Below, piece by piece: positions 22,725-59,216 of a stretch of DNA of 64,000 nucleotides. The notes below the pieces were generated by a model that was not told the origin of the DNA, searched no databases, and worked only from the letters and a program-made list of their open reading frames with translations. Every line of letters starts with the position of its first letter. Positions within the stretch are counted from its first letter, which is position 1. A program made the position numbers and the translations under genes. The stretch is from Macrostomum lignano (Eukaryota): NCBI GenBank assembly GCA_002269645.1, contig NIVC01001610.1, positions 62,001 to 126,000 of the forward strand, given 5' to 3'.

Positions 22725-23054
22725 ATGGCTCGAACAAAGCAGACAGCCAGGAAAGCCGCGCCGCCGAATCTTTTTCCCATTCAGCAGCAGGTGCAGCAGG
22801 AGCAGATGCTGCAACAGCAGACCGCTAGTAACTTCTCAGAGGAAGAGAAAACTGAGACAGAAACTGGCTCGGAGACTCCGGACTCGGATGAGGAGGAGCA
22901 GCAAAAGAATCTGTTTTCCAACAACTTGGTGCGTCCTAATCGACGACGTCGCGACGAGGTCGCCGCCGGTCCGCAGAGCCAGTTGAGCACGAAAAATTCG
23001 CAGGCTATTCGAAATGCCTACGACCGCCTTCAACTGGAGAGAAACGCCCTCGAT
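22725..23054 (+). CDS. Exon 1: MARTKQTARK histone-H3-like N-terminus followed by a Gln-rich and acidic linker
   Basis: The first 9 residues after Met are identical to H3 residues 1-9, then AAPPNLF replaces STGGKAP. There is no histone fold. Confidence 0.85.
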
Positions 23055-59000: not shown

Positions 59001-59216
59001 AGTCGCGCAAGGCTTCAACGCCGCCGGACCTCCGTGCTGATCGGCCAGGAGGAGGCGGCCGCGCTGTCGTCGGCGAAGCCACCCTCAAAGCCGCGGCGCA
59101 CCTCGGCGCGTCGTCAGGATGGCGCGTCGGCAGCAACCGACGGCGCGGAGGCGACGCTCACGGCTAGTCAGGTGTCGCTGAAGAAGAACCGCAGCAAGGT
59201 GTGCTCAGTGCAGTAA
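22725..59216 (+). CDS. Giant multi-domain ROCO (LRRK-like) protein, about 3,700 aa, 34 exons: H3-tail mimic, LRR-like, pseudo-Roc/COR, Cys-rich, SPRY, LRR, Roc, COR, TIR, TIR, CaaX
   Basis: Exons: 22725-23054, 23205-23306, 24236-24361, 24454-24601, 25190-25407, 26074-26190, 26568-26767, 28899-29126, 29448-30420, 30700-30900, 31901-32492, 35167-35522, 36006-36121, 36399-36420, 37263-37470, 37554-37674, 39910-41137, 41431-41647, 42383-42706, 44767-44879, 44961-45611, 46262-46591, 46983-47489, 48211-48591, 49440-49874, 50222-50383, 50486-50682, 50783-51271, 51627-52134, 54457-55008, 55907-55939, 56030-56408, 58348-58624 and 58953-59216. All are GT-AG with compatible phases, and one base is missing at 58418-58420. 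There is an in-frame TAG at 22692-22694 and a GCCATGG start context. That the chain is one transcript is inferred. Confidence 0.72.
23320..24205. repeat. (CTA)n microsatellite, about 885 bp, intronic
   Basis: About 530 bp of pure repeat followed by a degenerate tail. Confidence 0.98.
24620..25170. repeat. CTACCCTAT/CTATCCTAT low-complexity repeat, intronic
   Basis: Units of about 9 bp. Confidence 0.92.
26215..26510. repeat. 20-bp minisatellite (ACTGAGAGTAGGTAGGGTAC)n
   Basis: About 14 copies. Confidence 0.95.
26860..28835. repeat. 21-bp minisatellite (GGATCCGTGGGTCAAGCTCTA)n with higher-order block duplication
   Basis: About 93 copies. Variant patterns recur in blocks. Confidence 0.97.
29150..29390. 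repeat. 24-bp minisatellite (CCTAACTTCAGCGGGCCTGACACC)n
   Basis: About 9 copies. Confidence 0.93.
30421..31800. repeat. 22-bp minisatellite (RTGAGTCAGGAGCTGWKACAGA)n in two blocks (30421-30600 and 31135-31800) flanking one exon
   Basis: The first unit begins exactly at the GTGAGT donor at 30421. Confidence 0.95.
32665..33275. repeat. (GTT/GCT/GTG)n compound trinucleotide repeat
   Basis: About 610 bp. It is the source of the poly-L, poly-V and poly-N ORFs. Confidence 0.97.
33280..35105. repeat. 102/106-bp satellite array
   Basis: CACATCAAGTCCC recurs every 102 or 106 bp (about 17 copies). The unit contains an internal dimer of CAGCTTCTSTGCCTCAT, and degenerate copies occur at about 32560-32640. 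Confidence 0.96.
35167..41137 (+). CDS. Cys-rich motif and SPRY domain (SPRYD3-like) segment of the giant gene
   Basis: CVLCGNC...CLC...CATCGVCADC, then VGLLIGQSPL..DTFTIKIVSRGAEGTISIGLVPFGYHTTSQPGWRAGSIGYHGDDGGLF...GGFFACVGMHSPGEIVQL, a typical SPRY pattern. Confidence 0.8.
35590..35853 (+). mobile_element. tRNA-derived SINE with a CORE-like central domain
   Basis: A box TAGCCCAGTGG, B box GGTTCGATTC, central CACTTAAACTC..CTTCAGTTCACCCAGCTGTAAAATGGG resembling the MIR/CORE consensus, an (ATT)n tail, and a second copy at 10064-10240. Confidence 0.82.
36490..39670. repeat. About 27-bp C-rich minisatellite (CCACCCCAATCCTGCCTCACCTGACAC)n in two blocks (36490-37250 and 37795-39670)
   Basis: The same family lies on both sides of exons 37263-37470 and 37554-37674. 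Confidence 0.95.
41145..41400. repeat. 34-bp minisatellite (ACCTGTTGWATCCCAGTGTGTGRCTACSTGTCTC)n
   Basis: About 7 copies. Confidence 0.93.
41670..42200. repeat. 31-34-bp minisatellite (CTGCTTTCTGTCCCATCCTTGATCCTTTGTTGGG)n
   Basis: About 16 copies. Confidence 0.94.
42728..44730. repeat. 35-bp minisatellite (GATGGGATAGTCATTGTGCGGCTGTTGTGTGTCTT)n
   Basis: About 57 copies filling the intron. Confidence 0.97.
45480..51271 (+). CDS. LRR-Roc-COR core of the giant gene
   Basis: LRRs such as LKSLSFSATKLATLP and LTNLKTLQLNYQAIRRIPDAIVRLRRLQSLQLSSNP. Roc motifs: GLGGVGKTS (48244-48270), ITDGIDI, WDFAGQKVYYNTHQFFL and VVGTHSD. COR motifs: AVNFLNDIGSIQYF, VVINPKW, MVPCLLP, YLPAGLFNRAQVRL and VWKRG. Confidence 0.93.
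45645..45912 (-). mobile_element. Probable second SINE family copy with a truncated head
   Basis: The reverse complement begins GGTTCGATTCCACGCGCGGCC (B box), followed by a GC-rich body within an intron. Confidence 0.4.
47530..48170. repeat. About 14-bp repeat (CAATCCCAATGCAA)n
   Basis: Fills the intron between the LRR and Roc exons. Confidence 0.94.
48660..49020. repeat. About 21-bp degenerate minisatellite (CGTCTTAATCGRCCCTATCRA)n
   Basis: Visible tandem copies. Confidence 0.88.
49975..50170. repeat. 46-bp tandem repeat, about 4 copies
   Basis: CAGTCGCTCTCAGCCCCAATGTACACGCACCC recurs. Confidence 0.88.
51145..54720 (+). CDS. Tandem TIR (TIR_2-like) domains of the giant gene
   Basis: TIR1: VLLVFLSKAFADDEACRGMF. 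TIR2: DVFISYCW..CWLDV..SLFEDISDGLRQCSVVLAFASNEYQRSANCMMEFRFA..RKPVVMAIV. Confidence 0.88.
51290..51600. repeat. 52-bp minisatellite, about 6 copies
   Basis: AAGCCCAGTTTCCCTGTCTCAGGCATAA...CCAGTCTCGGACAC. Confidence 0.93.
52175..54390. repeat. 10-bp repeat (GATGGTGTTG)n, about 2.2 kb, in the intron that splits TIR2
   Basis: About 220 copies. Confidence 0.98.
55035..55800. repeat. 30-bp minisatellite (AGCTTTGATGGRTGATTRRCAGGTACACTC)n
   Basis: About 25 copies. Confidence 0.96.
56425..57760. repeat. 20-22-bp minisatellite (CTGCTGACTCAGTGYCTTCA, with a CTCCTACTAACTCAGTG variant)
   Basis: About 63 copies beginning just after the donor at 56409. Confidence 0.96.
58655..58940. repeat. 28-bp minisatellite (CACCGGGATCTCAGCTCATGCAATCTCA)n
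   Basis: About 10 copies filling the last intron. Confidence 0.94.

Follow-up and report, generated by a model that had tools for sequence, protein, structure and literature searches.

Identification of a giant ROCO-TIR gene

Does the region from 22725 to 59216 (forward strand) of the 64,000-nucleotide stretch of Macrostomum lignano contig NIVC01001610.1 analysed here, hereafter called the window, encode one giant protein of the ROCO type, and is its combination of domains a single oddity or the property of a family? The original prediction had proposed one gene of 34 exons and about 3,700 codons in one frame, broken by one indel, with an architecture not recognised from elsewhere. Our independent rebuild reproduced this gene with 35 exons separated by introns of 76-2,674 nucleotides, all 34 of them bounded by GT-AG, and with a coding sequence of 11,222 nucleotides, corresponding to 3,740 codons after the addition of one base (stop codon 59214-59216). 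It is very probable that the region is one protein-coding gene of a conserved giant ROCO-TIR family with the anatomy described below. The locus is best seen as a flatworm representative of a TIR-effector branch of ROCO proteins that is conserved yet undescribed, not as a one-off fusion. Gene, anatomy and mechanism taken together, we regard the explanation given here as probable.

From the N to the C terminus the deduced protein carries a tail identical to that of histone H3, a leucine-rich region of the RNI type, a divergent region, orphan COR-A/COR-B-like domains, a 10-cysteine module, SPRY, a middle region, LRRs, a linker with a degenerate EF-hand, further LRRs, Roc, COR-A/COR-B, TIR1, TIR2, a C-terminal domain and a polybasic stretch with a CaaX box. 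The model was obtained with a codon-usage score trained on the reading frames in which LRR, Roc, COR and TIR were evident and with canonical splice sites, using our own splice-aware exon-chaining dynamic program over 20-62 kb. This ab initio parse preferred a single gene of 33 exons and was afterwards refined by manual curation and homology. The ATG exon at 22725 was restored, two small SPRY exons were added (phases 0 to 1 and 1 to 2, matching their neighbours), the acceptor at 49467 was replaced by 49440 on the basis of homology to a related fragment (P0001), exons 36215-36270 and 36347-36420 were added from UniProt fragments, and a single exon at 58348-58624 with one frameshift replaced a 24-nucleotide mini-exon and a 95-nucleotide "intron". 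A spurious 3-nucleotide first exon of the parse was dropped by phase logic and homology. The idea that exons 42383-42706, 44767-44879 and 55907-55939 were artefacts of phase fixing was rejected, as the paralogues show conserved coding sequence there. The N-terminal exons were found 56-83% identical to predicted proteins of M. lignano, with some stretches near 100%.

The two halves of the protein form one chain

The claim of one continuous giant gene was confirmed by homology across its whole length. Comparison with the paralogue PAA58707.1 (BOX15_Mlig008399g1, 2,913 residues) by BLASTP yielded a single high-scoring pair covering residues 646-3626 (third-stage model numbering) with 43.5% identity and E = 0, and the global alignment showed no break at any exon junction. 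Judged from the sequences, this match of the spliced product to an independently annotated paralogue is far beyond chance. The Mlig_3_7 annotation, which includes PAA58707.1, was built from RNA-seq transcripts, with gene ends taken from mapped trans-splice and poly(A) sites where available (PMC5730564). A UniProt entry of M. lignano, A0A1I8F3A9, is 99.7% identical over exon 18 and spans the region behind SPRY through exons 19-23 to the LRRs. Residues 804-1481 and 2231-3623 of the model aligned in the same order with residues 593-1189 (8.6e-38) and 1790-3173 (E 0) of the Tubulanus protein, and Ylistrum and Sinanodonta similarly gave two ordered segments in one protein each (model residues ~800-1480/1570 and ~1900/2230-3600). 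RefSeq proteins of 2,800-3,300 residues from a nemertean, bivalves, gastropods, a brachiopod and amphioxus hold both halves, again in the same order. Exon 22 lacks an ATG near its start and must therefore be internal; it cannot begin a gene. By comparison of the sequences, the full-length product is the conserved one.

Word-seeded searches with residues 1-1090 and ~1310-2430 (third-stage model) returned only fragmentary, frameshifted predictions of M. lignano. The near-identical UniProt fragments (A0A1I8FIN7, A0A1I8FHP4, A0A1I8F3A9, A0A1I8JPV6 and related entries) stem from the old ML2 assembly and are riddled with frameshifts. Their automatic names are mutually inconsistent (COR, Calpain catalytic, SHR-BD, PLAT, TNFR-Cys, PIH1_CS) and were not relied on.

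LRR-Roc-COR core

The predicted LRR-Roc-COR core was recovered with Pfam LRRs, Roc, COR-A and COR-B. Roc (PF08477) scored 4.6e-22 on exon 25 alone and 1e-19 on the first model, directly followed in that model by COR-A (5.1e-24) and COR-B (2.5e-29). The G motifs are intact and occur once in the protein (P-loop GLGGVGKT, DFAGQ, THSD), from which GTP binding and hydrolysis are predicted. The nearest solved structure of the Roc-COR part is LRRK2 (1e-38), and LRRK2 and CtRoco were the top PDB matches. LRRK2, LRRK1 and the bacterial Roco protein of C. tepidum share the LRR-Roc-COR core and the same G motifs; by analogy to LRRK2 and bacterial Roco, dimerisation mediated by COR is likely. They differ in their effector part, which consists of kinase and WD40, whereas the window protein carries the tandem TIR, an extra orphan COR, SPRY and CaaX. 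It has neither ankyrin nor armadillo repeats. Between the LRR blocks (47040-47110, residues ~2365-2390) orthologues have an intact EF-hand loop, for example DNDKNGLLDEGE and DVNKNNELDEQE, and both M. lignano paralogues are without calcium-binding residues in this loop (RYFSALLTDAQVAS).

Tandem TIR domains

The tandem TIR behind COR was likewise substantiated: in a segment of the TIR region from a later model, Pfam TIR_2 matched with 5.6e-20 in two stretches, and TIR with 0.0035. TIR1 covers approximately residues 3028-3150 and TIR2 approximately residues 3185-3300. TIR domains signal by ordered self-association, and those with a glutamate in helix alpha-C can cleave NAD+, as in SARM1, plant TNL proteins and Thoeris. 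In TIR2, Glu3273 (54556-54558) lies within SNEYQRSANCMMEF (NCMMEF) and is present in every family member that the motif search matched. It aligns with the glutamate of WCWDEL in Cat1, an NAD+-cleaving enzyme (NADase) and the nearest solved TIR (E 0.011). TIR1 has a methionine at the position of this catalytic-type glutamate. Compared with SARM1, plant TNLs, Thoeris ThsB and Cat1, TIR2 keeps the glutamate of their S..C..E[LF] helix, and the logic of a sensor and a switch upstream of TIR is common to all of them, with marginal similarity in sequence. The switch of the window protein is a Roc GTPase, whereas the TIR NADase systems use a STAND ATPase, ARM/SAM or CARF.

A second COR domain and the cysteine module

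The original prediction spoke of a double ROCO protein. Of this, a second, divergent COR stood, and no second Roc or second P-loop was detectable. The N-terminal COR-like domain comprises residues ~785-1090, and its family profile aligned with a Roc-COR profile in hhalign with 97.4% (E 1.4e-11). The posterior confidence of this alignment was high over COR-A (LVEALQWLHERGSVIFLRHLSLIVTDLPWFFDLL) and COR-B, with its peak at exon 10, and 0-2 over the Roc columns. A hidden Markov model (HMM) of Roc-COR, built from 105 genuine Roc-COR segments, gave 40.0 bits for the N-terminal half of the amphioxus orthologue, 33.8 for the scallop and 9-18 for several others, with shuffled sequences at 3.2 or below; these matches were confined to the COR columns. 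Starting from the first 1,210 residues, jackhmmer converged on the COR-like regions of the orthologues, with residues 785-1032 homologous. A Roc-only HMM remained at noise on all N-terminal halves, and the corresponding hhalign values were 0.3% and 4%. The whole protein of 3,740 residues contains one P-loop, one DxxGQ and one Roc match. As far as sequence methods can tell, one Roc and two COR domains are present; the additional COR either is an orphan or belongs to a Roc that diverged beyond recognition by such methods. Residues ~260-350 (LLFVSLPEVQF, QVVIVVLNDFD) were considered as a dead Roc and rejected, as no statistical test supports an N-terminal Roc.

Upstream of SPRY, exon 12 encodes a module of 10 cysteines (CxxCxxCx5C...CxC...CxxCxxCxxC), presumably binding zinc. 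Both M. lignano paralogue models and the orthologues from the nemertean and the bivalves share this pattern, and inspection shows it in Lingula as well.

SPRY and the variable slot

The predicted SPRY domain is spread over exons 16-18 and was supported, weakly in this copy and clearly in orthologues: the colinear nemertean orthologue scored 48.1 bits (E 1.5e-12), and the hallmark GW..S.GYHGDDG is present in the window copy. The slot between the cysteine module and the LRRs is occupied by SPRY in the window protein, the nemertean and some bivalves (P0138-P0140), by one or two MBT repeats at the same position in amphioxus (Pfam 2.8e-40), Pecten and Haliotis (P0129, P0135, P0282), and by a PLAT-like beta-sandwich in one Haliotis protein (P0130). 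Swapping of SPRY, MBT and PLAT is a pattern typical of diversifying sensor domains.

C-terminal CaaX box

The protein ends with SLKKNRSKVCSVQ (KKNRSKVCSVQ), that is, a polybasic stretch followed by the CaaX box CSVQ, and the paralogue PAA58707.1 ends with SLKKNRSKVCNIQ. Twelve family members besides the window protein carry CSLM, CTVM, CSVM (twice), CNIS, CSIQ (twice), CVLL, CVIL (twice), CLLL and CNIQ. The proposed prenylation site thus exists as a motif conserved across 13 family members, and such a polybasic-CaaX end predicts a farnesylated, membrane-bound protein.

The histone H3-like N terminus

The start MARTKQTARK matches the claim of an H3 tail exactly: after removal of the methionine, residues 2-10 (ARTKQTARK, 22728..22754, + strand) are identical to residues 1-9 of histone H3. 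In the six-frame translation of the window KQTARK has this one match only; the window contains no H3 gene, and the rest of the 330-nucleotide exon 1 has no other similarity to H3. One scallop protein, XP_060062845 of Ylistrum balloti, starts with MARTKQTARR. The remaining N termini of the family are basic and not identical to H3, for example MGKTKNAATK in the nemertean. Known H3 mimics (ARKS/ARKT of G9a, SETDB1 and influenza NS1) likewise place a short H3-identical peptide in a non-histone protein. They are usually internal or C-terminal motifs of four residues, whereas here nine identical residues form the true N terminus.

The first ~640 residues are poorly conserved in the family, and jackhmmer connects residues 146-236 to the same N-terminal leucine-rich region of the orthologues.

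A family in spiralians and amphioxus

The full HMMER scan seeded with a related fragment (P0006) gave 9,382 matches, the best of which were giant proteins with Roc-COR ~1,400-2,150 residues from the N terminus. Members were found in Tubulanus (Nemertea), in Ylistrum, Pecten, Sinanodonta, Haliotis, Physella and Bulinus (Mollusca), in Lingula (Brachiopoda), in Dimorphilus (Annelida) and in Branchiostoma, i.e., only in spiralians and amphioxus and in none of the animals commonly used as models in genetics. Tubulanus polymorphus XP_074647641, Ylistrum balloti XP_060065175 and XP_060062845, Lingula anatina XP_013412619, Haliotis asinina XP_067667740, Branchiostoma lanceolatum CAH1232773 and PAA58707.1 have the same overall domain order as the window protein, namely leucine-rich region, orphan COR, cysteine module, variable slot, LRR, EF-hand-type linker, LRR, Roc-COR, TIR, TIR, C-terminal domain and CaaX. 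The exact H3 start is limited to the window protein and one scallop paralogue, and the EF-hand loop is degenerate in M. lignano. Identity to the family was 32-39% over the C-terminal ~1,100-1,900 residues and 21-25% over the second COR, the cysteine module and SPRY. The architecture is consequently not the novelty that had been suggested, since an orthologous family with the same order exists in Platyhelminthes, Nemertea, Mollusca, Brachiopoda, Annelida and Cephalochordata; this family is not a well-described one.

The database names of its members are nearly all "uncharacterized protein", besides "MFHAS1" and "pats1". MFHAS1 (MASL1) is an LRR-Roc-COR protein of ~1,050 residues without TIR, SPRY, second COR or CaaX. 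It shares with the window protein the LRR-Roc-COR core without a kinase, and its architecture does not fit the window protein because the latter has two TIRs, SPRY, a second COR and CaaX at 3.5 times the length. The label "MFHAS1" of the amphioxus protein is an automatic best-match name, not a statement of orthology. The literature search covered descriptions of a ROCO-TIR family, "ecTIR-DC" and an ARTKQTARK mimic among ROCO proteins, and its one result was a survey of Aplysia, in which an LRR-ROC-COR-TIR core with MBT, EF-hand and NHR accessories was listed in silico among immune candidates (PMC9334734). In the Aplysia set, LRR, ROC, COR and TIR are combined with MBT, EF-hand, NHR or Death accessories, and a role as a GTPase arm of a TLR/MyD88-like pathway was proposed for it; over Roc, an Aplysia fragment and the window protein are 65% identical. 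The survey classed these proteins as TLR-/MyD88-like; their N-terminal half, second COR, CaaX box and H3-like start are not described there (PMC9334734).

Proposed function

Reading the protein as membrane-tethered, GTPase-gated and TIR-bearing in signalling is a reasonable inference. That it forms a GTP-gated TIR platform which is anchored to membranes and serves innate immunity or cell death is a tentative proposal, made by analogy. In such a mechanism, the CaaX box and the polybasic tail would be farnesylated and would hold the protein on the cytosolic face of membranes, where the LRRs, SPRY and the N-terminal modules might bind ligands or partners. How the tandem TIR assembles would depend on the nucleotide state of Roc-COR, possibly together with COR-mediated dimerisation of the kind seen in LRRK2 and bacterial Roco. 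Once assembled, the TIRs could signal as TIR-TIR scaffolds or, through TIR2, by cleaving NAD+, giving an innate-immune or cell-death switch analogous to SARM1, plant TNLs and bacterial GTPase-effector conflict systems. In ROCO proteins the position behind COR is the effector slot, where LRRK and DAPK have a kinase. Conflict systems built from LRR-GTPase-COR proteins, with effector domains that vary, have been described (PMC8195603).

The presence of MBT repeats, which bind methylated lysine, in the SPRY slot of sister proteins suggests a tail-reader or decoy mechanism for the H3-like start. The start might be a working histone-tail mimic in an immune-type receptor, either as a decoy for H3-targeting enzymes or pathogen effectors or as an intramolecular ligand of the module in the variable slot (SPRY here, MBT in the sisters); modification, cleavage or displacement of the tail would then free the control of the TIRs by Roc-COR at the membrane. 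We consider this idea speculative and improbable. If true, it would provide an animal counterpart of the integrated decoys of plant NLRs, wired to a ROCO GTPase, not to a STAND ATPase.

The family would link the ROCO field (LRRK2) with the TIR field (SARM1, plant NLRs, bacterial defence), and it adds an orphan COR, a swappable SPRY/MBT/PLAT slot, a predicted farnesyl anchor and a perfect H3 tail in at least two phyla. It opens the questions of how Roc gates a non-kinase effector, whether animal TIRs beyond SARM1 have NADase activity, and what an N-terminal histone mimic does on a membrane-anchored protein. With RNA interference and transgenesis available in M. lignano, the locus offers a practical entry point.

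Alternative explanations

We are aware that the region can be read in other ways. A split into two genes is conceivable in one place, the intron 46592-46982, where the predicted absence of a stop or polyadenylation signal between the halves needs a minor qualification: translation continued past the donor at 46591 runs into a stop at 46622-46624, and ATTAAA follows at 46669. Homology, however, bridges the junction. An upstream unit from the H3-like tail through SPRY to the first LRR exon could end at this stop and be polyadenylated behind ATTAAA, while a downstream LRR-Roc-COR-TIR-TIR-CaaX gene would be capped with a spliced leader at 46983 and start with the methionine at 47028. In line with this, an in-frame ATG lies 45 nucleotides past the acceptor, A0A1I8F3A9 terminates at exactly this stop, an Aplysia "pats1-like" fragment begins at the equivalent position, and M. 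lignano trans-splices ~39% of its genes, with polycistronic precursors making up ~7% of the assembled transcripts (PMC5730564). We nevertheless judge two units very improbable, as the paralogue model derived from RNA-seq transcripts continues through the equivalent junction, every full-length orthologue places LRRs, EF-hand linker, LRRs and Roc on the same chain behind a long N-terminal half, and the first LRR exon and the pre-Roc LRRs make up one LRR domain. In addition, the context of the ATG at 47028 is poor (T at -3), and polyadenylation-type hexamers are not enriched, with 9 seen in the gene versus ~18 expected from sequence length alone. Still rather unlikely, if less remote, is a decaying duplicate (pseudogene) of a functional paralogue, in which a real frameshift truncates or alters the C-terminal domain and the CaaX anchor. 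The single indel that had been claimed is real and was placed at the C-run 58418-58420 within exon 58348-58624, where one base is missing compared to the conserved frame. The frame before this run reads GLAKCQLGSGKLVWLC and the next frame after it EHQRSGNGRVTVLPP, compared to SGLSKCALGSGKLLWLCLEHQRAGNGRVTVLP in the paralogue; adding one base restores the motif GLAKCQLGSGKLVWLCP.HQRSGNGRVTVL, with SGLSKCALGSGKLLWLCLEHQRAGNGRVTVL as paralogue counterpart and a matching motif in all orthologues. Decay would agree with a break within a conserved motif, with several near-identical copies in UniProt and with the hidden polyploidy of M. lignano, which has 180 Mb of duplicated blocks at 95% identity or above (PMC5730564). 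It does not agree with the lack of a second lesion across 11.2 kb of coding sequence, with 34 of 34 introns still GT-AG and with every other conserved motif intact. Moreover, a base lost from a homopolymer is a typical consensus error of long reads, and a weak cryptic intron of 95 nucleotides (58372-58466) could also preserve the frame. The frameshift is either an assembly error or a genuine lesion of this copy.

The same gene might also act in an LRRK-like way on membrane traffic or the cytoskeleton; TIRs and SPRY would then be mere scaffolds for protein interaction and the H3-like start a basic tail that arose by chance, without any immune or NADase role. LRRK2 as the nearest solved structure, the CaaX box with polybasic stretch as a general membrane-targeting device and the lack of the catalytic-type glutamate in TIR1 all fit this view. 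We consider it unlikely, though the least so of these alternatives, since the glutamate motif of TIR2 is found in every member matched, in at least six phyla, the tandem TIR occupies the effector position behind GTPase-COR as in conflict systems, the exact H3(1-8/9) start recurs in two phyla, and immune receptors typically have variable "sensor" slots such as the one for SPRY, MBT or PLAT. Several points nevertheless weigh against our interpretation as a membrane-anchored TIR signalling protein. ROCO proteins such as LRRK2 act in membrane trafficking, and the immune role proposed for the family is drawn by analogy. The conserved glutamate of the TIR2 type also occurs in TIRs that are not NADases, e.g., TLR2, so that enzymatic activity of TIR2 is not implied. 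The one-gene conclusion rests on homology and on the annotation of a paralogue, and this copy has the frameshift at 58418-58420. SPRY in the window reached 19.7-19.9 bits in Pfam (E 8e-4 to 9e-4), below the gathering threshold of 26.3. Approximately 1,300 residues have no assigned fold; for exon 18 (39911-41137) AlphaFold2 with an alignment of 8 rows gave a mean pLDDT of 31.6.

As a separate observation, the intron 46592-46982 also holds a duplicated element of 41 nucleotides, and the strong acceptor at 46983 lies 45 nucleotides before the ATG. This layout would be expected for an internal poly(A) and spliced-leader trans-splice site, and an extra short isoform is possible.

Exon structure

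All exons lie on the + strand. Exon 1 (22725..23054, residues 1-110; ATG context GCGCCATGG) encodes MARTKQTARKAAPP and then a low-complexity stretch rich in acidic residues and glutamine. Exon 2 (23163..23306, residues 111-158) was found in an M. lignano fragment (P0121), and exon 3 (24236..24361, residues 159-200), which contains GEAYITDQGIRWLCEAF, is part of the RNI/AMN1-type leucine-rich region. Exon 4 (24454..24601, residues 201-250) is followed by exon 5 (25223..25407, residues 250-311), whose acceptor is uncertain, with P0121 implying a slightly later one, and by exon 6 (26074..26190, residues 312-350), the exact start point of fragment P0122. Behind exons 7 (26568..26767, residues 351-417) and 8 (28899..29126, residues 417-493), the long exon 9 (29448..30420, residues 493-817) comprises a beta-rich part, a low-complexity linker and a helical region, after which the N-terminal COR-A-like domain begins. 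Its 5' end may vary, as UniProt fragment P0122 has an earlier acceptor adding ALTINKKSAKPSENFSS. In front of it, 29131-29447 holds a 24-nucleotide repeat in ~10 copies, encoding PNFSGPDT octapeptides in a frame open straight into exon 9.

The N-terminal COR continues with the COR-A-like core in exon 10 (30700..30900, residues 818-884, WLHERGSVIFLRHLSLIVTDLPWFFDLL), which is 80% identical to the paralogue, and the COR-B-like domain in exon 11 (31901..32492, residues 885-1082). Exon 12 with the cysteine module (35167..35522, residues 1082-1200) and exon 13 (36006..36121, residues 1201-1239) follow. Read-through of the donor at 36121 reaches a stop after one codon (36122-36124, CLKE*), where UniProt fragment P0123 ends; this end is either an artefact of prediction or marks a truncated isoform without SPRY and everything beyond. 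Exon 14 (36215..36270, residues 1239-1258, DTSTSGLIQVYPEVNVLEK) is based on fragments P0126 and P0127 and on its splice sites, and exon 15 (36347..36420, residues 1258-1282) encodes DLEFKSKPQSLDYSVDISFRLSPAN. SPRY begins in exon 16 (37263..37470, residues 1283-1352), whose phases 0 to 1 fit the neighbours, has its core in exon 17 (37554..37674, residues 1352-1392, ISIGLVPFGYHTTSQPGWRAGSIGYHGDDGG; Pfam SPRY E 7.9e-4) and ends in exon 18 (39910..41137, residues 1392-1801), which also encodes the middle region with an insert of lysine, glycine and acidic residues and is colinear with the paralogue. After exon 19 (41431..41647, residues 1802-1874), exon 20 (42383..42706, residues 1874-1982) carries the conserved FPSPN..WN, LYG..C, GFLWVFLP and KAHLLC.SG (paralogues P0149 and P0279, fragment P0125) and exon 21 (44767..44879, residues 1982-2019) VHLIDSAG..SALDCH..AQ.A.R.L.

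In exon 22 (44961..45611, residues 2020-2236) an alanine-rich insert precedes the beginning of the LRR region, which proceeds with the repeats of exon 23 (46262..46591, residues 2237-2346; Pfam LRR_14, LRR_4 and others) and, behind the linker with the degenerate EF-hand, with the pre-Roc LRRs of exon 24 (46983..47489, residues 2347-2515; Pfam LRR_8). The translation of exon 24 aligns with fragments of Aplysia and Biomphalaria and with the orthologues. Roc is encoded by exon 25 (48211..48591, residues 2516-2642, P-loop at 48244-48267) and ends in exon 26 (49440..49874, residues 2643-2787), which is shared with COR-A (Pfam); COR-A continues in exon 27 (50222..50383, residues 2788-2841), and COR-B lies in exon 28 (50486..50682, residues 2842-2907) and the first part of exon 29 (50783..51271, residues 2907-3070). 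The latter also contains the first half of TIR1, exon 30 (51627..52134, residues 3070-3239, KDVFISYCWANS, Pfam TIR_2) its second half and the first half of TIR2, and exon 31 (54457..55008, residues 3240-3423) the second half of TIR2, followed by a coiled stretch of lysine and glutamate. The micro-exon 32 (55907..55939, residues 3424-3434) of 33 nucleotides encodes VLCENEQ, part of a motif LCE[HN]EQGWH conserved family-wide. A conserved C-terminal domain without an assigned fold and with a glycine-rich insert is found in exon 33 (56030..56408, residues 3435-3561), the conserved C.LGSGK..WLC..H motif in exon 34 (58348..58624, residues 3561-3653), in which the frame is broken once, and the basic tail with the CaaX box (59202-59213) in exon 35 (58953..59216, residues 3654-3740 and stop).

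Surroundings of the locus and repeats

A neighbouring gene for a TRP-type cation channel lies at ~5000-15100 on the - strand, so that it and the ROCO-TIR gene are divergently transcribed. It encodes ankyrin repeats at 13011-13193 (Pfam Ank 7.7e-6), and the final transmembrane helices of the channel at 5007-5186 (Pfam Ion_trans 2.8e-7). The two genes are separated by 6.6 kb of AT-rich sequence (16000-22650, 33-35% GC) without repeat arrays, which probably contains the promoter; the GC content rises sharply at ~22650, approximately 70 nucleotides before the ATG at 22725.

Within the gene, short GC-rich coding blocks alternate with introns, and nearly every intron has a tandem array (mini- or microsatellite) of its own, in which units of 3 to ~100 bp are repeated as many as 295 times. 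Examples are found at 23321-24205, 26845-28849, 33389-35119, 37796-39673, 42723-44732, 52178-54395 and 56413-57758. The genome of M. lignano is reported to consist to 15% of simple and tandem repeats and to be heavily duplicated (PMC5730564). Tandem arrays make up most of the 25 kb of intron sequence, with many long spurious open reading frames on both strands, and some of them are strongly strand-skewed, with a GC skew of 0.88 at 52-54 kb.

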